NCBI GenBank assembly: GCA_965285935.1
Contig: OZ260661.1
Location: 60,698,001-60,762,000, forward strand
Length of the DNA: 64,000 bases
Origin: Ophelia neglecta
Lineage: Eukaryota
Direction of reading: 5' to 3'
The position numbers and the translations under genes are program-made. Below, piece after piece: positions 14,201-36,163 of the stretch. The notes under the pieces are model-generated. The model worked only from the letters and a program-made list of their open reading frames with translations. It had not been told where the DNA came from and did not search any database. Within the stretch, counting starts at the first letter, position 1, and the number at the start of each line of letters is the position of its first letter.

Positions 14201-17200
14201 AATAATACTTTGAAATCCCTTTTTTCAGGAGTATTAAACGGTGTTCTTGTCTTAAAATTCGTTTCCGAAATAAGGATTGGTCGATTTTTTTAAAGTTTTC
14301 ATACGAGAACAAGATCAAAACAATAAATAACTATTTGAAATGAACAAAACTGTTTTAATTAATTAAAAAACCAACAGTCATGATTACGATCTTTTAAATG
14401 TTTTAGAAATACAAATGTTGCATCTAGTATAGGCCCTAGACCAAATAAAGGTACTCAAATTCACAGGAACAATAGAAATAATGTAATTAATCATAGAAGC
14501 GGCAGATCACATTTTAAACAGCGATTTTTTTCAAACAGATTGCATGAAACTTAGTTAATCACCCGTAAAACCTGCTTCTATATTTTCAACAAAAACTGTT
14601 ATATACTGAAACCCATATTTTCATATAGGGTATATGCTAGAAGCTTTTGCCAATTTTTGGTATAAATAGACTTTATTTGTTTGAATGGCGGTATGCCAAC
14701 AGAACACGGATAGTCATTGACTAGGCAGTTATACCATTTGGCTGGTGACAACACATAACAAAAAAGATCCTGAATGTTATAAATGAGTCTTATTAATGGA
14801 CTTGTCATTATTTCAGATGTAATGGGCTTGATATGGGCAACGAAAATTGATTTAAGCTTGTTTCATGCCGCTTGGTAACATTAGTTACAGCTAAGTATCC
14901 AAGTAGCTCTCTTGTCGACGCACACTGTTAAAACGGATGAAATAATCATTTGATATAATGTAGCATAATGGCAGCTTGCACCTGTAAACGCTCTGTCATG
15001 ACTGGCTTGTTGTTTATTCTGTCTGAAACTGTTACTTGATTCTTATAGGCATGTTGTATTTAATATGGGATATACTATGTATGGATGTAGGTAAAATGAC
15101 GGGGAAAGCTCTAGGCAGATAACCTTTGCCCCCCTGAGTTTGGAAGTAGTCGTAGTGGGTTTTACCCAGCAATCAAAAGAAATTATAGTATCAAATACCA
15201 GTATTCAACACAAACATAACTATTCATGAATTTATCTAGAATCAGGAAAAAGTAAGTGGATTTCTGGTTTTTGTTATCACATTCCCACGTCTTCCCCGGG
15301 CTATTTAGTCCCAATTTTGCTTCATAAACACTGCACGTTTTCTATCTTTCAATTTGTACGGAATTAATTGCACGTATTTCATGTGCTTTCGTGACAGATA
15401 TTTGCCTGATAAAAGTATTTCTCAACCTATTCCTAATTTAGTTTCTCTAGGGATGTATTTGAGCGAACAACTAGCCTCGTTCGCGCAGGAAAAGTCGGAT
15501 ATATCGGATTCGCATGTTCTTGTATATGTTGAAGGCAGATTGAGAAATTCTTCCCATTCATCGCCCCAGGGCTCAGCCAGGGTAAGACATAGCATCTATT
15601 TTCAGTATGTTGTTATTTTTGCAACTGCGTCGGACTGAAAAGTACTTGAGATACTCCTGTCCCTTTCCTTGTTCAGATGGCTGGGAATTTGGTCGTCTGC
15701 TTGCAAGCATCTCTGGGAACTTTCCCAAGAACAGGGGAGCCGGGTGTTTTTAATTGTAATAAATATCGATTGACAATAATTCTAACTTAAAGCTGTCACG
15801 GTTTTTATACTCGATCGACAATTATCAGAAATATCGGAATTTTGAACTTCGATTGCGTAGAACGTTTTAAAAGTTGACTTACCCACTGCGTTGGCAGACC
15901 GTTTTGAAATAGATGCAGGGCTACACATATCCACATCCACTATAAAAGAATCACGTTTCAAATAGTACTTGGATGCTAATATCTGGTTTAATGTGCAAGC
16001 CTGAGGTTGTTGAGCCGGGCACATAAACTGTTTAAAGTTACTGACACAATTAAGTTTAAGACACAGGCCTAGATATATGTGATTTCTAAGGCTGTGATTC
16101 GCTAACTCTCTTTTTTAGTATTTTAAATTGCGTTGAGATGCAAATCCACGTGCACCAAAGACAGTCAACTGGTTAGAGTATGTTACTGCAGATGTCATAG
16201 ATCAACGAAGATGAAGAAATTAATGTGCTTGCATACATTAAAAAGCACTTTGAAGGTGTTACTAAAGAAATAATTCTCAATAAAATGGTCTGGGGCTTCA
16301 CCACTGCTATTCAGGCCGCCTCAGTATCTTCCAGGGAGTGAGCTAAGGGCTATTTACAGTAATTTTATCGAAAGAAACGGAGACAAATGTCCCATTGGTG
16401 GACAAAAGATCAATTTTACAAGATGGTGGTGACCCAGCACCTGGCTATACGCTCGATCAGTAACAATGAAGTTATAGCCGGTTCATATCAGCGTTATAGC
16501 CGTGGCCTGGTAATTTATAGAGGCTTGTAGCAAAACATTACGCAGAACATTGCGCATATAAAACAACTTATATGAGACATTTAAACGACATGTCGGCCGA
16601 TTTATTTCCCTTCCAGCGGGTCTCTTCCAACAGGATACTAGATGAAGTCGGTAGTCGTCTGCATGCGCTTGATCGAATATTACTGATAGGGAAAGAGCTG
16701 CTGTGTGTGCGAAACGAATACCGATTCGGATTCGGATTATTTGGCCTTTGGGATACTTTTTCCTCTTGTTTACTTGGATATATGTGATCACGCTATCTGA
16801 CCTGAAAGCCGACAACAATCGGGCTAAAGGTAAACCGTTTAATACTCATAAACCAGACTGTAATAAGGCCTCATAGTGCTTTATATATCGAAATTATTAT
16901 CTAGAATGTTCCTTTCCCTGAAGTCGTTGATATCATTGTAACTAATTCAAACACGACAGAACCAAGGAGTTATTCGATAGATAGTATTGAAAGCTTGCTT
17001 TAAAGTTTCTCGAAAGATCTTAGCTGTTGTATGTTGTGCCTTTTAGCCGCACCGAAAGTTCTGGCGTGGCGTTGAAAAGTCACAATACAAGATGTATACA
17101 AACTTTCGTCTTTAAGTTTGTGTTTTGTGGCATACTGTCTTCCATGATTTACACATTCTTCTATAGTGATTAAAAACCTATCACTACTGGCAAACGGTGG

Positions 17201-20200
17201 TTTTAACAAGTTGTTGAGAGAATGGTCCAATGGTAGAATAAGCAAGCGAGTCGATGTCAGGGGGTGGTGATAGCTGGTGTCGGCTGGGTCGGCACCTTCC
17301 CCTGCCGGGTCAGCAACATGAGTCGTCCGCCATTTGTTCTCTTCAAATTACCTAACCTTCTTTAACTTCCACACATTTCGATGAAAGAATTAGGTCTATA
17401 CTTAATTTGTTACAGTTTGCCACTAAAAACGAGAAATTGGATTGATACTGATTAAAATTATACACAATATGGCATATTACAGCTACAACTAAAGCAGCTA
17501 TTTTGTTAAATTTGTACCCTATTACTTGCTTATTTTCCTACGTCTTTCGTTCAACAGGTCTAAGATATGTTGCGCTAAAATATTGTACATCTATAGCTGT
17601 TTGTTTTCTTCGGTTTATGTCAGTATTTCTTCAATTCTTATGCACCAGCTGCCCAATCAGCGTATAATGATATTGAGACAGAACTGTTTGCCTCTTGGCG
17701 CCCATCGGATGGTGCCCGGGTTTTATAATCAAACACACCAGGGCCGAGTCCGATGTGTCTGTTATAGTGGGCTGAGCTGTAAGTTGGCAGTACATGAAGT
17801 GCGGATGGAGTGCCGTCGTTAGTCAATGTATAAGTAGTGTTGTTTGAGCAGCGTCAGAGGGCTTTCTCTTGTGGCTGAGACTGGATCTTCTACGGGCCAC
17901 CCAGCTTAGTAAAAATCAATACTGTCGTACTCCGCTCCATCAAGTGTAAGCACCGCCGTCCTCACTAAAGTGAGGCAAATTGTACATGTATAAATGAACT
18001 TTTAAACGCCTAACAATATCTGTGGAGCCGAGATATGTAGGCTGTATCTGTGCCCTCATTCCAGTGGAATATAATTTGATAGATCAAATAAATATAATCT
18101 ATACTTTCGCAACTTATAAATCAGTCCACTTATGTTTGTCCAAATTTCAGTATAAGAATATCAACGAAATAGTGGAAGTTATTATAAAAAAGGTGTAAAA
18201 ATCTGACTTCAAACGAACATAACAGATTGACCTATCTGACAATCCCTTCATTAATATTTATCGACCAATTTTACGCTATGGCATGACACAATTAAATTTT
18301 ATTGCTATGCATCAGTTAGATGTTTAATTCGCGTGCACTTCTTCTGTGTTTGATGACAAGAGGTTAACTACACTGTCATATTTTAAACGGTGCAACGAGC
18401 ATATTTTGATTTTTAAACCAGTGTGCGCCGAATATTCATTTGTAAGGCTTTGAAAACTATGTCAAACTTATTACTAATTGGTCACTTTAGAGAGAAATAT
18501 GTTCATCTTTATATCTTTCCTTGTTAGTCCAAACAATGACCATTATAATTTCTTTGTTGATATGTCCCGATTGCATGTGGATTGACATTTGCTGTTGAAT
18601 GGCCATTTTGTACATTCTCCCAGTGTCGAAATAAACACAAAGCTATTGACCACTACTCACGCCAATTTCAAATGCTCACCTTTGGTTTCCGCGTGCTTTT
18701 CGCAGCCTTGCCACAGGTCGTGGTTCATGTGAGATGACTGAGATATTTTTAAAGAATTTAAAAGTTCTTATTTGGGGTATGGGACGCAAAAAACGTATCA
18801 AGATAAATTGAATATACATTTAATCAACGAATCAATAAGTAAAGCAGGTCTCTCATGCGGTAAAAAATATCTTACCACCAACAAATATGATATTTCAATT
18901 GAGTGCCTTTTGTCTTCTTATGATGTATACGGTTTATATATAACTAAGCCATAAATAAGAATTTGTTATTTTCTGCCCCGTGAAGCATTAAGAAAGATTC
19001 GATGGGATTTTTGATGGGTCCACAACTCTCCAATCATGATATGTTTCATTTTTAGATCTGACATAATTTTGGCCTTACTTAAAATGCAGGGTGAAGGAAC
19101 ATAAATTTAAACAATTAAAATTCGATCGATCAGCTGTCGGTGGACACAATTAAGTGTAATCCCGCGAGTGTCTTTGAGACTTTATCAGCCTAGCTCGGCC
19201 CTCCCTAGGAGGCTAGATCCAGCAGGCTCCCCCTAATCACGGAAAACGATAAATCTTTTTTCTCAATTTAACTCGGACAGGTTTCATAGTTGGCTTGGCA
19301 GTTGACTTGTAGTCAATTTACGGCTGAGATTTATGTACCACTGTTTACACTTGAAGGGGATTTACCAATTATCGGATTTGTTAAGGTGTCACTCCTCTTT
19401 TCCAGGCTAAAATGAATTTAATGTCAAACACATAATATCCATATCAGTTCAATTGTTATATCTTTATACGGCCTTTCACGTACACACAGGTGAGAATAAT
19501 TCCGATACATAGGTCCCATCTATGGATTCTGGCTGATATAGAAAGTAACGAATCTATTTCATTCTGGTAAAATTTTGACCGAAAATGTGTGCAAAATCAG
19601 ACTTTCATAAACCCCCATTTATATTATTAAATACAGGCTATATACTTAGAAAATAACGGAGGTTATTAAATATAAGTATATATTTTCGTTGGCATTTTAA
19701 CTTTGCTACAATTTGTTTATAAGTGAGATAAAACAAATTGGAAATTGGTAAGTTAATGACGATGTTGATGAAAATAAATGTCCCCCTCTCAGTTTGATGG
19801 CAAATGTATGTAACATTACCGTTTCCATCAGCGAAAATATAATCTGATAATATCAAATCAGCTTAGATGGGCTTACCACACCGCCCCCTTTAAAGTGAGT
19901 ATTTATTGGACAATATTACACCGGTATCTCCTACCGAGATAATGCGGCCTTCCATTTCCACCCAGTAGGAATTAATTGATGAAAGTCAAACGTATAATCA
20001 GAATTTGGCCTAAATGGCCAAATCAGTTTTTCCGTAAATTGGTGTCATTTGGCAAATCAAACACGTGTCCTGTCATTCTCAGATTAGGAAACACCATAAT
20101 TTCCTTCTCTATGGCAACGCTCCTAGGGAATCACCTAGTTCCTGTTCTACTTGTACGGATTTCTGAAGTAGCCCGGATGGATTTCTGGTAACTCTATACG

Positions 20201-23200
20201 CCTACAGCGTAATTATTTTGTTGTATCTAGTTGCAAAAAAATAACTTGGTGATTCGCCCGTTCAGAAACAATTATCTTTGTAAACAAGCAGCCGCCGCTA
20301 ACATGAAAGAGTGCCTTGTTTAGTGTAACTCTATCCATCTCTTCCCCACTCCATTTATGGCCCTAAATCATGCCGTAGTGGCAGCTCCGCTGCTCTTGTT
20401 TCTTCCGGGGAGAACAGATGATACAGCAGCTTTGTCACAGCCGACCATCTATGACGCTCTGGCGGAAAGCGGCTGAACTATTTGTAGGAAGCGGTATACA
20501 GAATCTGAGCAGCTGCTTCATGTTCGCTCTATTGAGCAAAATACTGCTATCTTCATTCCAACTAAACCAATTTAGGCGAATATGTCCAAGTAAAGTTAAA
20601 GTAATCACGGGGCTATATTTTAGTACAACGATACGAATTGGAACTATTAAGTGTCGCTACTCAGAATAGCGTTTCACTTACAGCAAGCCGAATGTTATAA
20701 GCAGCATTTCGGTTATTTGTGTCTTTTTTTAAAAGTGGGCACAAACAAACCGGAAAGTTTTGAGTAACATATCAATATGTATGCAATTTCGTTCAAAGTT
20801 CTCTCACACTGATTCTGCCGAACAATTGTAACTTGTGATACATTCCTATAAGGCACGACTTCATGGGTTTTATTGATCCGGATGTTTGTAACAAAGTGAC
20901 TGACTTGATTTATTATCGAAGTGTTACATTTTCTTATTATCTGGATATTGCAGTGATGAAAGTAACATATTCTGACAATTTACAAAACTTCCAGGTCTCT
21001 CCCAATTTACAATATGATGGGTATCAACAAATAACGAGAGCTCATGAGCATTGCGATAGATACAATGCGATTTTCTCGGCATACTTACATGTATTAATAT
21101 TAAAATGAAACATTGGCAAGCAAGATGCGCCTGATATAAAACCCTTCCTTCATATCCGGTTCATATGAATCCCAGAATACTTTGATGCAAGTTTTATATA
21201 AAAACAGTGATGGAAAAATCATAAGTTCTGGGTGGCTACGACCGCCCTATATACACCTTGTGTTGCCCCCCAAGAATATCCAGCCGTATCTATTTGACCT
21301 TTGACCGCGGTATGTTTACCCATACATTACAGTCACGTCAAAGCTGTCAGGCGGTTTCACAGGCCGACCCAGCACTGTTGATTACAAGTTTCTCTTTGGC
21401 CAGTATAACTCATCCTTCATTCTTTCTATCGGAACTGTCATTGCAACATAAAGATACGCAGGCCCCTAAAATAGATACAGGTTACCACCTCAGAAACCTG
21501 GGTTGAAATACAATGCACACAAAGCATTTTTTTTGTAATATGCAGAGTCATTTTTTTTCTTCAAAACTGTGAAGGCCTAACTTTTACAGTTTGTACCGCC
21601 CCTAATGATGGGGAGGTCGGAGTGAATGGCACATCATTTGAAAACATATATTTTTCTTTAAAAGCTATAGCAGGGAAGAATTACCCGACATCACTTGCTA
21701 GTTTTTAATTACCATATAGGTCTAGGCTGACTCATACACAACATTCGTTCCCGTCGTCTCATCAATCATTAATATATTAACCTGGGCCTGGATAAATCCC
21801 CCTCCAGAGAGTTGGAGCTGATTACACTTGATGGGGCCTGGTCCATTGACATCCCCTTGATCAGGGAAATTCAGGTTTGCATAGCCACTGACCAAATGGT
21901 ATCTGCTTGTATGTTCTCTATTCAAATCGTCTCAGATTATCGATCTGCTGACCGCTTAGCAAGTAATCGGGGAGCATATAAATGAATTCTGTGGGGCGCT
22001 GTGAAAGAGCTTTCTAATCCACAGTGTGCCTGATCTTTGACAAGCCTTATTAGAAAAGCTAATGCAGTAAATTAGATCATTCGTCCTGGAAAATCCTGAT
22101 AAACAGAGAACTCCTAAATGTACTGGAAAAGGCTGAGTGCGCCCAATCTAAGTAGGTGGTATTACAAGTAAGGTAGAGGCCTAAAACCTGTACCCCAACA
22201 GTGTGCTTTGGTAAAACATGTATCCTATCGTTCATGTATTGCTTTAGAATGGTGACATACGAAAAAGGTTTTTATCGAAGAATGTCTAAACAAGATTGAT
22301 GTGGTTGCCCTTCAGCTCTTTAAGGTTAGTGCCCGCCCATTGATAGGTGCTAGTTGTATAAAAGGTGTTTTTTCGTCTTTAAAAAAAGGAATTGATGAGG
22401 AGTTTTTTTTTGTTTTTGGCAATGTGATGGTATGCAATATTTCCATCTAGCTATAGGTCTAGATGCTATTTTATATTCGAATATAATCAATATATTGACT
22501 GTACATGTGAGGCTGAGGTGCCATGTTGACGGTAAAATACACCCCACAGCTGGTACTCACCGATGAGTTTTCACGAAGTAGGGCGTAGTGTCTTCCTTAT
22601 GCAACAGACGGCGCCCACAACGGCTCCAGCGCTGTACAGCTCAAATACCAAGGCAATGTTCACGCGTACTTCTACCGTTCGGTTTTACTACACGAACGGG
22701 GAAGTTGTATAGGCCAGGCTAACAAGAGTTAAAATACATGTACTTGAAGTCCTATCGTTTATTAGCACCTGGACTGGCTTTATATTACCCCTATTATTAA
22801 TTAACCCGAACGTCTTCTATCTCCTTCAAAGGAAACACAAACGATTTGTGTGATGTAAAATTAACATCGACTATACGGTAACAGGTCTAAACGGAGAAGG
22901 TGAACGCTGCTATAGTTGTTTTAACCCATTTGGTGGGAGTGGGGGTGGGATGGGGAGGGCCTGTTGCATTTTATTTGTGCCTATACGGTCATAGGTCGAC
23001 TCTTGGAAATATTACCAGGCCTTCTCAGGTTTATACATATCATGTCTGTCTAGCTCACTCATCAAACTAGTTTACTAAAATAGGTATCCCCATATCATTT
23101 GATTTTGGGTAGCTCTTGTTAAATTAAACCACGGTAAGCGACTATCTATTTTAGAGGTTTCTAAATCCCATCTTATTTCGTTCTATATGTATATAAAAAA

Positions 23201-23817
23201 ATCATATGTTAAGTCAACGGGGGAAATCTATTCTGCTAAAATAATATGTTTTATATTATTATAAAATTAATGACCTTCGCGTTGGTGAATAAACCTGATT
23301 GTAGAGAGTAAAACATTAAGGTGGGTTGTGCCTGGGAACAACGACCAAGATTACGGAGTTTTTCATTAAAGGTATGCTTCTCAGTTGAAAATATTTAACC
23401 TAAAATATATAATATAAAAGAGATATTGGCCAAAAATCCTTATAGTTAAACATTCACTAAAACATTAATACAAAATAGGAATTTAATTTAAAAAAATAAA
23501 AGAATTTCAGTTGCATTCGTAAGTTTTTAACCTGACCAATTACTTTTTTTCCTCATTGTATGTCTAGAAATCAGAAAAAAAACATTGTATTGTCTACTAA
23601 ATAATCAAAAGATTGTCTAACTTAATTTTTCTAAGGTAACTAGAAATGAAGTATGCTTTAATGTTGACATATGTAGGCCTATTTATAAATGCACACCATC
23701 GACCATTAGGGACTCTAAAACATAAAATAGAACACATAAGGACACTTAATATGCCAACTGAAATGTTTTGTTGTTTCTTTATTCAATATTTGTATACAGT
23801 TTTTCTTAAATTTTACG

Positions 23818-23882
23818 CATATATATTTATGTATATATATATACATAGATATATATTTATATATTTATATATATATATACAC
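23818..23882. repeat. Imperfect (TA)n microsatellite
   Basis: catatatatttatgtatatatatatacatagatatatatttatatatttatatatatatatac. Confidence 0.9.
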
Positions 23883-24009
23883 AGACTACGATACAGGTCA
23901 CTACTCTAACTAGGGCCATTCAGTATATGTCATTATTTATAAATGTTTAGGCTTCAACGATTGCAAGCTATTTGAAAATAATAAAGTAGGTCTATATTAT
24001 AACGCCGCT

Positions 24010-24015
24010 TTTATT
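24010..24015 (-). terminator. Candidate Scr polyadenylation signal AATAAA
   Basis: First canonical AATAAA I found downstream of the Scr stop, implying a 3'UTR of about 2.9 kb. ATTAAA variants occur earlier at about 26867 and 25272. Confidence 0.3.
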
Positions 24016-25671
24016 ATTACAAAAAACTATGCCCATTAAACAGATATGTGTTGTAAGATTGAACATGTACATATTATATGATTTACGTCATATAAGTTAG
24101 AAAAATAAAAATCTTTATGTATTAGGCCATGCTTACTGCAGAATCTAATGTTTGCTGTGCTATCTGAACGAATTTATGTTAAAATCATGAGCGTTTTTCC
24201 TATAAAACAATCATATTTTTTGTTAATATGTGAGCTAACACAAGAGATGGGATATAAAGACCCTTCTCGGAATACAGCCACAAAACAGGAATTTCATACT
24301 CTTTGAGAATAGCCATGCTTATAAAACATTGATAACACAATCAACTTTATAGATATCACTGGGAACAAGCAATGTTTTTTTCCTCATATAAGGCGTATTG
24401 GAACAATTCTCCTTATTGTTCACGGTACGCTAAAATATGACGTTTTACCCTATTATTTGTATCGCTGAGGTATCCTATTCTGGGATTGTAAACTTGATGA
24501 GGAGCACTTGTGGCTTGGGCCTGTGCGGGGGAAGACTAGCATGCACACGGCACATGCAGTGGGTTGAGAGCTACATGTATATACAAGCTATGATAAAACA
24601 TAAGCTAAAATGACTGGCGAAAACTGCCTTAGCCCTTGATAGTTCTTTGATCAAAGGAGTACCTTTGGGTTATTTTTATCTTTAAATAACAGTACACTGT
24701 ATAATCGGTATATTTTTTACAAACGTAATATTGCCTTACATTATTGGTGATATTCCCTGAAAACGTTGCCAAGTTAATTTGAACCAGATGGCGACCAAAT
24801 TGCTTTTGCCTCCAGCTCTGCCAAGGCCGATGCTGTACATAATTATTTGCCTGGGGTGGCTAAAGCTACGCATGCTCCTGCATCTCATTATCTTACATAC
24901 CAGCTCATTTGCATAATTAGCAGGCAGCCAATCCCTTGACCATAACGAGGCGCCATCTAGAATGTGGCCGGTAACAACTATCTCTTTGGTCCGACCACAA
25001 CGCTCTTACCCAGGCAGTAATTTCTCCCAGCTTTGTTGAATACGCTACAGTCAGCCTATCTACAATGCAGACATACCGATCTACATTGGTTCAACAGATA
25101 ACATTGTGTTATTCGCCTCAAAAAAGACATTATAAATGCTTCGAAAGCCATAATTATACAATAATTTAACCAGCTGAAGCCACAAGTTCCCCTTTTCATG
25201 TTTTTGTAGTTTACCCAAGACCGAGACTGCTGCTCTCCTCGATAAAACACTAATATTATCTGTACTATCATTTTAATGTACAAGGTGCGTATAACCAAAC
25301 TGTATGAATATCTATAGCAACGGTAGTTGTCTTGCATTAGGAAACAAAATGTCTTCTCCAATCTACAACGATAGGTTTTATGGTGCCAACATGAAACTCA
25401 ACGCACTATCACTCTCACAATATCTACGCACTATTTTGATTTGAGCTATGTCATATGTTATAGTCAAGTACAAAAAACAATGAATTCAACAGAAATAGCT
25501 CCACTGCGGTATTGGTTTGAACTAGGCCATTAACATCAAGTCACAAGCACGATAACATAACACTGGACTGTCCACGAACATAGCATTACCACTTGTCATT
25601 AGAAATTCATCATAACAATAAATGTGACATATATATATATATAGTAGAAGTATATCATCATATGAACTGAT

Positions 25672-26504
25672 TTACCCTATCAATTAATTACCCTCTTCAA
25701 GAACAAGAAGTATATAATTACCCTCTACACCTCCATTGCTCAAAGTTTACACGGATGATTCACTCAGATTGTTTCAAGAAATATTACCCCATTGACCGCA
25801 TGAATATAGTAATAAAATGGTATAAATACAAATTGAAAACAGTTATTGAAACAGGAAGTGTATATACTCATAAAGTTGCTTCACCAGAATGCGTCTATTA
25901 CCCTGTCGAAAGGAAGGGCTCAAAACGGATCCTTTCATAATTATCAAAATAATGTAAATGTCTAAATGTGGAACTACATCTAATTTAAGCTCAGTGTGAT
26001 GTTGTTTTTTCCGTCCAAATCAGTTCAGAATAACCAGGCCTGATTGTTACATATTTGCGGAGCATTCATTCTTACCCTGGTTGCCATAGCAACTGCACTA
26101 ATCGAGGAAACACTTTTTACCCTGTGCCCTCTTGTCATATTCATTCCGATTCTATCAATTCCCATCATACTCTGCCAATGTTCTACAAAATTATTTGGAA
26201 ACTGCAAGGTTACCCTGGTATAACATTCTCCAAGACACTTTAAAGTCCAGTATAAAAACAAGACTTGCTTATAGTCCCACAACAGCTTGCAAGACTTGTC
26301 TTTTAAGACATTTTTCACATCTGCAGAATTTACTATACTATTTTATAGCTTAGATTATATGTTAACTCTACCTAAGTCCTAGACTTCCATAAAATATTGA
26401 ACCTGACGCGATAAATTTACCCTATTGTTCAGCTAATTACCCTTTTGACCAACGTCATGACAAAGCTTTGCAAGATATGGAGGGCGATAATGATGAATTA
26501 CCCT
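25672..26504 (-). promoter_or_regulatory. Array of 10 AGGGUAA sites (miR-10-family seed matches) in the presumptive Scr 3'UTR
   Basis: Plus-strand TTACCCT at 25672, 25688, 25718, 25898, 26072, 26117, 26210, 26417, 26437 and 26498, all in one orientation, 0.4-1.2 kb past the stop codon. Two extend to the canonical miR-10 8-mer ACAGGGUA. Confidence 0.75.
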
Positions 26505-26892
26505 AAATAATGTTTTCTTTCTGCAGATTTTGAAAATCATGCACAGGATTAATAGCCTCGCCTCCATCTTACGAGTTCCGTTCGGAGAGCGTCAGTCTCC
26601 CAAACGGTACTTGGTCACGTGATTCCGCATGTCATTCTGACGTCATCGCCCAGCCAGCCAAAGGCAGACGACCGAGCCGTCGTGCCCTTCCGCCAAAACA
26701 GAGGTTAGTTATTGTAGCTTTTCATCACATTTCAAATCTCAGTGTTTCTAGAGCACAACACAAATAAAACAACTGTCAAATTTATACAACTTAGAATAAT
26801 AATAATACTTTCTATGGAAATTTGAGTATGAACGGTCTTGCTTTCTTGAACACCAAGATTCAGTCTTTTAATGCAAGTTATTTCTAAGTTGT

Positions 26893-35541
<8,649 letters not shown>

Positions 35542-36163
35542 CGTGTCCGAGATGCATTCGTCTCATCCAGGGGTAGATTTGAGGCTGGGTGGGTGCCGGG
35601 GTCTGTCCATCGGTCGAGTTCCTCTGAGACGAAGAGTTGGTGCTCTGGGGGCTGGAGTTGTTGCCCGAGGCTGATGTCGGACCCGGGGGGGTCGACGGCG
35701 TCTTTGAGGCCTGCTGGGAGGCTCCTGCGGCCCCGGCGGGAGGGGGAGACGAGGTGAGGGAGGCGGACATGTCAGCGTCCGAGTTGCTCGGCTCCTGGCT
35801 ACCGTTGCTGCTGCTGCCCGAACTGTACCTATTGCTGTTGGTATAGTTTGTGTTGGTTGTGGCGGTGTTCGCATGTGGGGAGCCAGAAGATGCCATTACG
35901 GTTGGCGGAGTTGGCGTGGAGTTTTCTCGGTTGAGGGGAGGGTGGCACAGCCTCTGACTGTTCATGCTGTAATAGTCCCTACCATTGTGCCCGGTCGAGC
36001 TGGGACTGGTGCTTTGATACTGGTAGCCGGGGCTGCTCACTCCCGTGTAGCTCCGGTAAGGACTAGTGGACTGCGGATAGTCTCGACCGTTCTCGCCCCC
36101 TCCACCGTCACTAACTCCTTGATTATAACAGGTCGTCAGCGAGTTCACGAAATAGGAACTCAT
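35542..36163 (-). CDS. Scr: Scr/Hox5 gene, coding exon 1
   Basis: ATG at 36163 begins MSSYFVNS (Hox5-type N-terminus). The middle is S/T/P/N-rich and the exon ends PQIYPWMRRMHLGH, followed by a phase-1 donor G|GTAATA at 35542/35541. Confidence 0.95.

Follow-up and report, generated by a model that had tools for sequence, protein, structure and literature searches.

Sense-strand AGGGUAA sites in the predicted Scr/Hox5 3' untranslated region of Ophelia neglecta point to a probable Hox-microRNA control circuit

Analysis of a 64-kb stretch of the Ophelia neglecta genome (hereafter the window; C1:60698001-60762000 of the assembly, with coordinates lacking a contig prefix given as window positions) revealed a dense array of the heptamer AGGGUAA downstream of the Hox gene Scr/Hox5. 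We propose, with a probability of about 0.8, that these heptamers are seed sites in the Scr 3' untranslated region (3'UTR) that are read by seed-shifted paralogues of the MIR-10 microRNA (miRNA) family, encoded in the posterior half of the Hox cluster. An earlier note, made from the letters of the window, had described the array; that observation was confirmed and the interpretation offered with it is supported, pointing to an undescribed Hox-microRNA control circuit.

An exact word search found ten copies of TTACCCT (AGGGUAA in the mRNA sense) on the + strand of 25672-26504, an eleventh copy at 24445 and a six-of-seven variant, TTACCCC, at 25784-25790, all as previously listed. The search found no copy in the opposite orientation from 15586 to 33378 and none within 9 kb of the array, the nearest − strand copies being at 15579 and 33379; the only others in the window were at 32910 (+) and 40219 (−), in keeping with the handful that had been noticed. 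Using a background of 5.6e-5 per nt per strand, taken from 262 kb of the same Hox cluster outside the array, 0.046 copies are expected in the 833 nt, below the ceiling of 0.1 proposed earlier, versus 10 seen (Poisson P(≥10) = 1.2e-20), and 0.18 copies are expected in the whole 3.2-kb UTR versus 11 (P(≥11) = 1.2e-16). All ten TACCCT words in the stretch are preceded by T, indicating that the full heptamer is the retained unit, and the direct repeats in the array (12-25 nt) have the heptamer at their centre and barely similar flanks, which bears out the view that the heptamer is kept while its surroundings differ. The extension to ACAGGGT, the canonical miR-10 match, occurs only at 25898 and 26117, again as described. 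Tandem Repeats Finder reported only an (AT)7 run in the array stretch, and the 961-nt stretch had no second match anywhere in the 762-Mb genome; a tandem repeat or transposon origin was rejected on these grounds, and a telomere-like repeat was rejected because TTACCCT differs from TAACCCT. A genome-wide scan for three consecutive sites was dominated by satellites and is uninformative on other targets.

The array lies downstream of one of two minus-strand homeoboxes in the window, which is of the Scr/Hox5 type; the other is of the Lox5 type, with a KLTGP tail. The best named matches of the Scr exon-1 peptide were annelid Hox5/Scr-like proteins, and exons 1 and 2 are separated by an 8.4-kb intron. 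The gene model comprises the following features, with splice junctions marked by a slash:

35542..36163, − strand: Scr/Hox5 exon 1, with ATG at 36163, YPWM at 35575 and donor G/GTAATA after 35542.
26893..27173, − strand: coding part of Scr/Hox5 exon 2, with acceptor ttttcag/AC at 27173, the homeobox and the stop codon TGA at 26895-26893.
23750..26892, − strand: predicted Scr 3'UTR of ~3.14 kb, its end placed by homology between its poly(A) signal and the one in the transcript contig L064.
23778..23783, − strand: AATAAA poly(A) signal, +3110 from the stop; GAATAAAGA...ATTTCAGTT matches the 30 nt of L064 that immediately precede its A-tail.

L064, a 4627-nt Logan contig, encodes a 304-amino-acid protein that shares a 90% cluster with the closest exon-2 homologue. 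It joins Scr exon 1 to exon 2 without an intron at the same junction as the window model (...MHLGH/DGVNG...), flanks the coding sequence with 565 nt of leader and 3147 nt of trailer, and ends with AATAAA followed 20 nt on by an A-run that is missing from the homologous place in the window genome. The spliced junction, the AATAAA and the non-genomic A-run together indicate that L064 represents a mature Scr transcript from a close relative. There are ten sense AGGGTAA and no TTACCCT in its 3'UTR, and its 5'UTR and coding sequence contain no AGGGTAA, so that in L064 the sites are in the 3'UTR of a mature mRNA. A global alignment of the window and L064 UTRs gave 52% identity overall, with blocks of 79-90%. 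Because the poly(A) signal of L064 corresponds to the window AATAAA at 23783, all 11 sites fall inside the predicted 3.14-kb UTR, the first of them 389 nt from the stop. The earlier interpretation depended on Scr transcripts reaching past about 26500; the 3147-nt L064 3'UTR aligns across the array, and its poly(A) signal would place the window 3' end far beyond that position.

Comparison with L064 also showed that the sites are conserved beyond the UTR as a whole. Six of the 11 window heptamers are identical column for column in L064, a seventh is so but for a gap in the alignment, and for an eighth the L064 counterpart is offset by 13 columns; against a background of 4.5% for 7-mers in the same alignment, the site conservation (6-7 of 11) has P = 3e-6. 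The closely spaced pairs, 30 and 16 nt apart, recur in L064 with spacings of 32 and 17 nt.

Orthologous Scr exon-2 loci were counted within 5-6 kb of the stop; the downstream DNA of L056, L057, L059, L060 and Solemya is unalignable with that of the window, and two exon-1-anchored loci (L054 and L055) end before exon 2. The AGGGTAA counts were:

L056: 10 sense, 0 antisense.
L057: 3 sense, 0 antisense.
L059: 5 sense, 1 antisense.
L060: 4 sense, 0 antisense.
L061 (the bivalve Solemya velum): 3 sense, 0 antisense.
Lottia gigantea: 0 sense, 1 antisense.

In an unbiased scan of all 7-mers over seven 3.5-kb Scr downstream regions (the window and L056-L061), with first-order Markov expectation, AGGGTAA ranked first (log-likelihood ratio (LLR) 76), with 32 sense copies and 0 of the reverse complement, and it remained at 21:0 when the window was left out. 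The strand specificity thus holds in the window UTR (11:0), in L064 (10:0) and over the seven regions (32:0). The enrichment in orthologous UTRs that the earlier note had anticipated was therefore found. Its label of a lophotrochozoan circuit holds in part: sites occur in L056, L057, L059, L060, Solemya and L064, but the zero in Lottia means that they are not pan-lophotrochozoan. The same seven regions contain a further word, CTGTAGC (8 sense, 0 antisense), present once or twice in six of them, which may be a second conserved UTR word.

Candidate readers of the array are encoded in the same cluster. All Hox homeoboxes are on the minus strand, with Scr at C1:60724977, and by their order they were taken as Hox1, Hox2, Hox3, Dfd, Scr, Lox5, Antp, Lox4, Lox2 and a Post gene. 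The hairpins relevant here are:

Between Dfd and Scr, − strand: canonical miR-10 hairpin.
C1:60625019-60625096, + strand, between Hox3 and Dfd: miR-993 hairpin (L002), opposite to every Hox gene of the cluster.
C1:60893924, − strand, between the presumed Lox4 and Lox2: Mir-10-P5-like hairpin, its 5p arm identical to oyster cgi-miR-10a-5p at 23/23 positions; z = −4.4.
C1:61102324-61102381, − strand: miR-1991-like (Mir-10-P6) hairpin (L045), 5p arm gUUUACCCUGUGAAUAGGGAACGU, matching Efe-Mir-10-P6-5p at 20/22 positions; z = −7.5.

Both shifted hairpins lie on the Hox strand, inside the cluster and posterior to Scr, a location of the miR-196/iab-4 type, with the miR-1991-like hairpin 22 kb past the last detected posterior homeobox, read as Post2. 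In each, the mature arm matches curated family members and the hairpin fold is stable; the Hox-strand hairpins tested against shuffles gave z from −4.4 to −7.5, and for miR-993 the fold alone was computed. The two strands of the miR-1991-like hairpin form folds of similar stability (z −7.5 and −8.3), and both 5p arms start UUUACCCUG. miR-993-5p was rejected as a reader of the sites, being a star arm in Eisenia and starting ACCCUG (PMC6160089 S2).

The shifted starts of these paralogues, which the earlier note had put forward, are documented in small-RNA data from oyster and Eisenia. Oyster cgi-miR-10a-5p is UUACCCUGUAGAACCGAGCGAGU by small-RNA sequencing (PMC4138081 Table S4), and cgi-miR-1991-5p is CUUACCCUGUAAAUCGGAGAAGU (CUUACCCUGUAAAUCGGAGAAGT in DNA letters), from a locus between Post2 and Post1; its expression co-varies with that of Post1 (r = 0.81; PMC4138081). 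In Eisenia, Mir-10-P5a/b were assigned the start UUACCCUG and Mir-10-P6 (mir-1991) is AUACCCUGUGAGUAGGGAACGU (PMC6160089 S2), and the Platynereis genome paper describes Mir-10-P5 as a lophotrochozoan-specific paralogue cut one nucleotide 5' of the ancestral site and reports the loss of P6 from Platynereis (PMC12257675). Of the two pairing registers proposed earlier, the 7mer-A1 one fits Mir-10-P5 and the 7mer-m8 one fits oyster miR-1991; Eisenia miR-1991 starts AUACCCUG, not CUUACCCU, so that the 7mer-m8 reading rests on the oyster register. In the window's cluster, the canonical, P5-like and P6-like hairpins all read UUUACCCUG, and −1 isomiRs are therefore possible from each.

The sites, numbered from the stop codon and all on the − strand, are:

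26498..26504, −: site 1, AGGGUAA, +389; 7mer-A1 for UUACCCUG and 7mer-m8 for N-UUACCCU; lineage-specific.
26437..26443, −: site 2, AGGGUAA, +450; lineage-specific, 20 nt to site 3.
26417..26423, −: site 3, AGGGUAAA, +470; L064 site 13 alignment columns off.
26210..26216, −: site 4, CAGGGUAA, +677; 8mer for UUACCCUG, aligns with L064 +772.
26117..26123, −: site 5, CACAGGGUAAA, +770; also a canonical miR-10 8mer, aligns with L064 +870.
26072..26078, −: site 6, CAGGGUAA, +815; aligns with L064 +917.
25898..25904, −: site 7, ACAGGGUAA, +989; also a canonical miR-10 8mer, aligns with L064 +1088.
25784..25790, −: six-of-seven variant GGGGUAA, +1103, with GGGUAA at +1104; 6mer in the N-UUACCCU register only.
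25718..25724, −: site 8, AGGGUAA, +1169; aligns with L064 +1265.
25688..25694, −: site 9, AGGGUAA, +1199; equivalent to L064 +1297 save for a 1-nt alignment gap, neighbours 30 and 16 nt away.
25672..25678, −: site 10, AGGGUAAA, +1215; aligns with L064 +1314.
24445..24451, −: site 11, AGGGUAAA, +2442; within the predicted UTR, lineage-specific.

Sorted by register, the window UTR contains four 8mers, no 7mer-m8, seven 7mer-A1 and no 6mer sites for UUACCCUG (P5 and Eisenia-type P6); four 8mers, seven 7mer-m8, one 7mer-A1 and two 6mers for N-UUACCCU (oyster-type miR-1991); and two 8mers, no 7mer-m8, two 7mer-A1 and no 6mer for canonical miR-10, with a nearly identical distribution in L064. The canonical miR-10 sites are the four CAGGGUA sites, comprising two 7mer-A1 sites and two 8mers (ACAGGGUA). 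Over the window and L064 UTRs, A follows AGGGUA in 21/21 cases and C precedes it in only 8/21, and there is no 7mer-m8-only or 6mer-only site in the UUACCCUG register. An A at 21/21 is hard to explain by a merely favourable A opposite miRNA nucleotide 1, and a paired position would explain it; we infer either an active product of the −1 register or selection for one heptamer that serves both registers. Site 5 pairs with nucleotides 1-11 of the miR-1991-like 5p arm, and its flank GAGGGCACAGGGTAA is kept in L064. Seed matches to let-7, miR-100, miR-125, miR-993-3p and miR-10-3p were absent from both the window and the L064 UTR.

These observations suggest a mechanism in which AGGGUAA acts as one heptamer that is canonical in both shifted registers. 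For miRNAs starting UUACCCUG (Mir-10-P5 and Eisenia-type Mir-10-P6) it would be a 7mer-A1 site, or an 8mer after C, and for an N-UUACCCU miRNA (oyster-type miR-1991) it would be a 7mer-m8 site; fitting mature 5' ends from the hairpins at C1:60893924 and C1:61102324 would be UUACCCUG and/or UUUACCCU. Once loaded, Argonaute could occupy up to eleven sites, with three pairs at a cooperative spacing of 16-30 nt, and Scr mRNA would be destabilised or silenced wherever the posterior miRNAs are expressed. The predicted outcome is that Scr is sharpened or cleared posteriorly, and the domains of Scr and of its putative repressors would then be complementary. More tentatively, and on balance doubtfully, MIR-10 regulation of Hox5/Scr could be ancestral to protostomes, with insects having kept one canonical site and with annelids and at least one protobranch bivalve having turned to shifted paralogues and a 10-site array, the heptamer being fixed as the only word that serves two or three registers, one of them that of an unannotated annelid −1 product (5'-N-UUACCCU). 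If so, the invariant A (21/21) would betray an abundant, not yet annotated −1 product in annelids, and shifted seeds would allow several posterior miRNAs to converge on a single site.

The strand bias, the UTR location and the conservation are compatible with an RNA-level reader of any kind, and the heptamers could thus be bound by a protein or a non-miRNA RNA, such as an hnRNP A1-like reader of UAGGG or U1 snRNP drawn to decoys, with effects on stability, localisation or polyadenylation; AGG/GUAA loosely resembles a 5' splice site. We consider this improbable. U1 or 5' splice-site decoys and hnRNP A1 sites were rejected as candidates, since the true splice-site-like words AGGTAAG and CAGGTAA are each absent from all seven Scr regions and the U that hnRNP A1 needs before AGGG is present at only 8/32 sites. 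Moreover, the edges of the motif are the exact seed registers of miRNA hairpins of the same cluster, and at site 5 the conserved flank lets pairing run on to nucleotide 11 of the miR-1991-like arm.

Slightly less probable still is an element acting at the DNA level, either a transcription-factor cluster, a Polycomb-type element or a region upstream of an antisense Hox5 transcript. The sequence (T)AATTACCC, with a homeodomain-like AATTA core, is present at half of the sites, a GC-rich island with an E-box, a CRE and + strand splice-like signals adjoins the array at 26526-26705, and antisense Hox5 transcripts are known in the nereidids Alitta and Platynereis (bioRxiv 10.1101/2021.01.30.428931). 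A bias of 32:0 over seven species is nevertheless unexpected for transcription-factor sites and argues against the orientation-independent enhancer that the earlier note had itself considered; the + strand A before TTACCCT is not kept, with U following AGGGUAA in the mRNA sense at 13/32 sites, the array sites lie within the mature mRNA of the relative, and that mRNA shows no conservation of the island. A neutral origin, whether from a decayed local repeat, a transposon remnant or chance, is effectively refuted by the 7-mer scan, the genome uniqueness and the positional conservation: two neighbouring sites do share ~15-25 nt of flank, suggesting small local duplications, and a MITE-like family has termini starting TTACCCTG, but the local P is ~1e-20, there is no tandem repeat in a stretch unique in the genome, the array flanks are unlike the MITE termini, and the enrichment arose independently in UTRs unalignable with the window, with positions conserved against 52% background identity.

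Several points weigh against regulation of Scr by the shifted paralogues. The extent of the 3'UTR in the window itself is drawn from homology, and ATTAAA signals at +21 and +1616, between which AATAAA and ATTAAA are absent, could yield short isoforms that escape regulation. In the register documented in annelids (UUACCCUG), 7/11 sites do not go beyond 7mer-A1, which is the weakest of the canonical types. Lottia lacks sites, although the literature gives both miRNA types there, and in Drosophila a conserved miR-10:Scr site has no major embryonic effect (PMC3290615). With the Rfam mir-10 model RF00104 (gathering threshold 47.5 bits), canonical miR-10 (35 bits) and miR-993 (35.9 bits) score below threshold, and the P5-like and P6-like hairpins are absent from the matches at E≤1. 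A hairpin between Lox5 and Antp also falls below that threshold, which only a miR-100 locus on C7 passes, and an Rfam search of the window found no miRNA. As the model omits the shifted hairpins, their family assignment rests on arm identity.

Targeting appears to be selective among the Hox genes. Within 3 kb of the stop codons of Hox1, Hox2, Hox3, Dfd, Scr and Lox5, which are the genes covered by this count, AGGGTAA occurs 11 times after Scr, twice after Hox1 and once after Hox2, and it is absent within 3 kb of the stop for Hox3, Dfd and Lox5. The zeros for Lox5 and Dfd agree with the gene-selective targeting inferred earlier, but the copies at Hox1 and Hox2 show that it is not exclusive. The Hox1 copies are at C1:60526541 and 60526890 (+367 and +716), the +367 copy reading ACAGGGTAAA, and the Hox2 copy is at C1:60547893, +150 from the stop; all three are in the sense orientation.

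Other features were observed in the UTR, the cluster and the genome. In the distal Scr 3'UTR, a 52-nt block at 24867-24918 that contains TTGCATAATTAGCAGGCAGCCAAT is 90% identical to L064 against the background of 52%. The GC-rich island at 26526-26705, within the predicted Scr 3'UTR, contains, besides a short stem-loop, an E-box at 26616-26621, a CRE at 26638-26645 and the word GCAGACGAC at 26664-26672, and on the + strand it is bounded by an acceptor-like ctgcag/ and a donor-like cagag/gttagt; an antisense exon or an antisense promoter is a possible identity for it. Between Lox5 and Antp, 19.4 kb past the window end, the MIR-10-type hairpin L005 (C1:60781392-60781467) is readable on both strands; its minus-strand 5p arm, CACCCUGUAGAACCGAGCUUGU, resembles Efe-Mir-10-P1f, and its plus-strand 5p arm, UACACUGUAGAAUAGGCUUGUG, has 22-nt identity with the start of the Efe-Mir-10-P7 precursor, a paralogue placed at the Capitella + Clitellata node in Eisenia data (PMC6160089), which, like the exon-1 peptide matches, favours an annelid origin of the genome. 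As with iab-4/iab-8, L005 may give rise to miRNAs from both sense and antisense strands. Elsewhere in the genome, dispersed MITE-like short inverted repeats have termini TTACCCTGCTCACAG...CTGTGAGCAGGGTAA (for example C5:50687469-50687535 and C8:72521156-72521199), and these hairpin-forming elements share their opening octamer with the shifted miR-10 paralogues.

The array would be a new member of the known class in which miRNAs embedded in a Hox cluster target a Hox 3'UTR. For multiplicity, the nearest parallels are lin-4:lin-14, let-7:hbl-1 and let-7:HMGA2, in which one UTR carries ~7-10 sites for one seed family, some of them cooperatively spaced; these share the multi-site UTR with Scr but differ in family and process, and, unlike in the lin-4 and let-7 UTRs, one heptamer here would serve two or three staggered registers. 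Vertebrate miR-10 reportedly targets HoxB1a and HoxB3a through the canonical seed and few sites, as Woltering and Durston are said to have described in 2008; likewise, the anterior genes Hox1 (two copies) and Hox2 (one copy) carry the word here.

The array resembles insect miR-10-5p:Scr (Brennecke et al. 2005; Lemons et al. 2012) in pairing a MIR-10 miRNA of the Hox cluster with the 3'UTR of Scr/Hox5, and in that sites are conserved while the surrounding UTR diverges. The insect interaction relies on one site, which combines a short seed with long 3' pairing and has been conserved for >300 My (PMC3290615; PMC1043860), whereas 10-11 seed-type sites occur here, in registers shifted 1-2 nt 5'; in insects the miRNA is canonical miR-10, whose gene adjoins Scr anteriorly, whereas the candidate hairpins here are posterior to Scr. 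In that respect the arrangement is closer to the posterior-prevalence circuits of miR-196 acting on Hoxb8 and Hoxa7 in vertebrates, and of miR-iab-4/iab-8 acting on Ubx, abd-A and Antp in Drosophila, in which the 3'UTR of a Hox gene has several sites for a miRNA encoded posterior to it (PMC3394115), and one annelid Mir-10-P1 paralogue has been noted to be placed similarly to Mir-196 and Iab-4 (PMC12257675). Unlike miR-196 and iab-4/8, which are unrelated families, the putative regulators here are Mir-10 duplicates set apart by seed shifting.

Spiralian Hox clusters hold several such seed-shifted Mir-10 duplicates, whose sequences and positions have been described with no target named (PMC4138081, PMC12257675, PMC3394115), and our literature search found no report of such spiralian targets for miR-1991 or Mir-10-P5/P6, or of miR-10:Scr there. 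The array offers a concrete, conserved and high-multiplicity target that makes the function of seed shifting testable. If the proposed circuit operates, the rule that Hox miRNAs repress more anterior Hox genes would extend to the third great bilaterian clade, where the regulators would be duplicates of the oldest Hox miRNA and not a new family, and the link with insect miR-10:Scr raises the possibility of a very old relationship between MIR-10 and Hox5.

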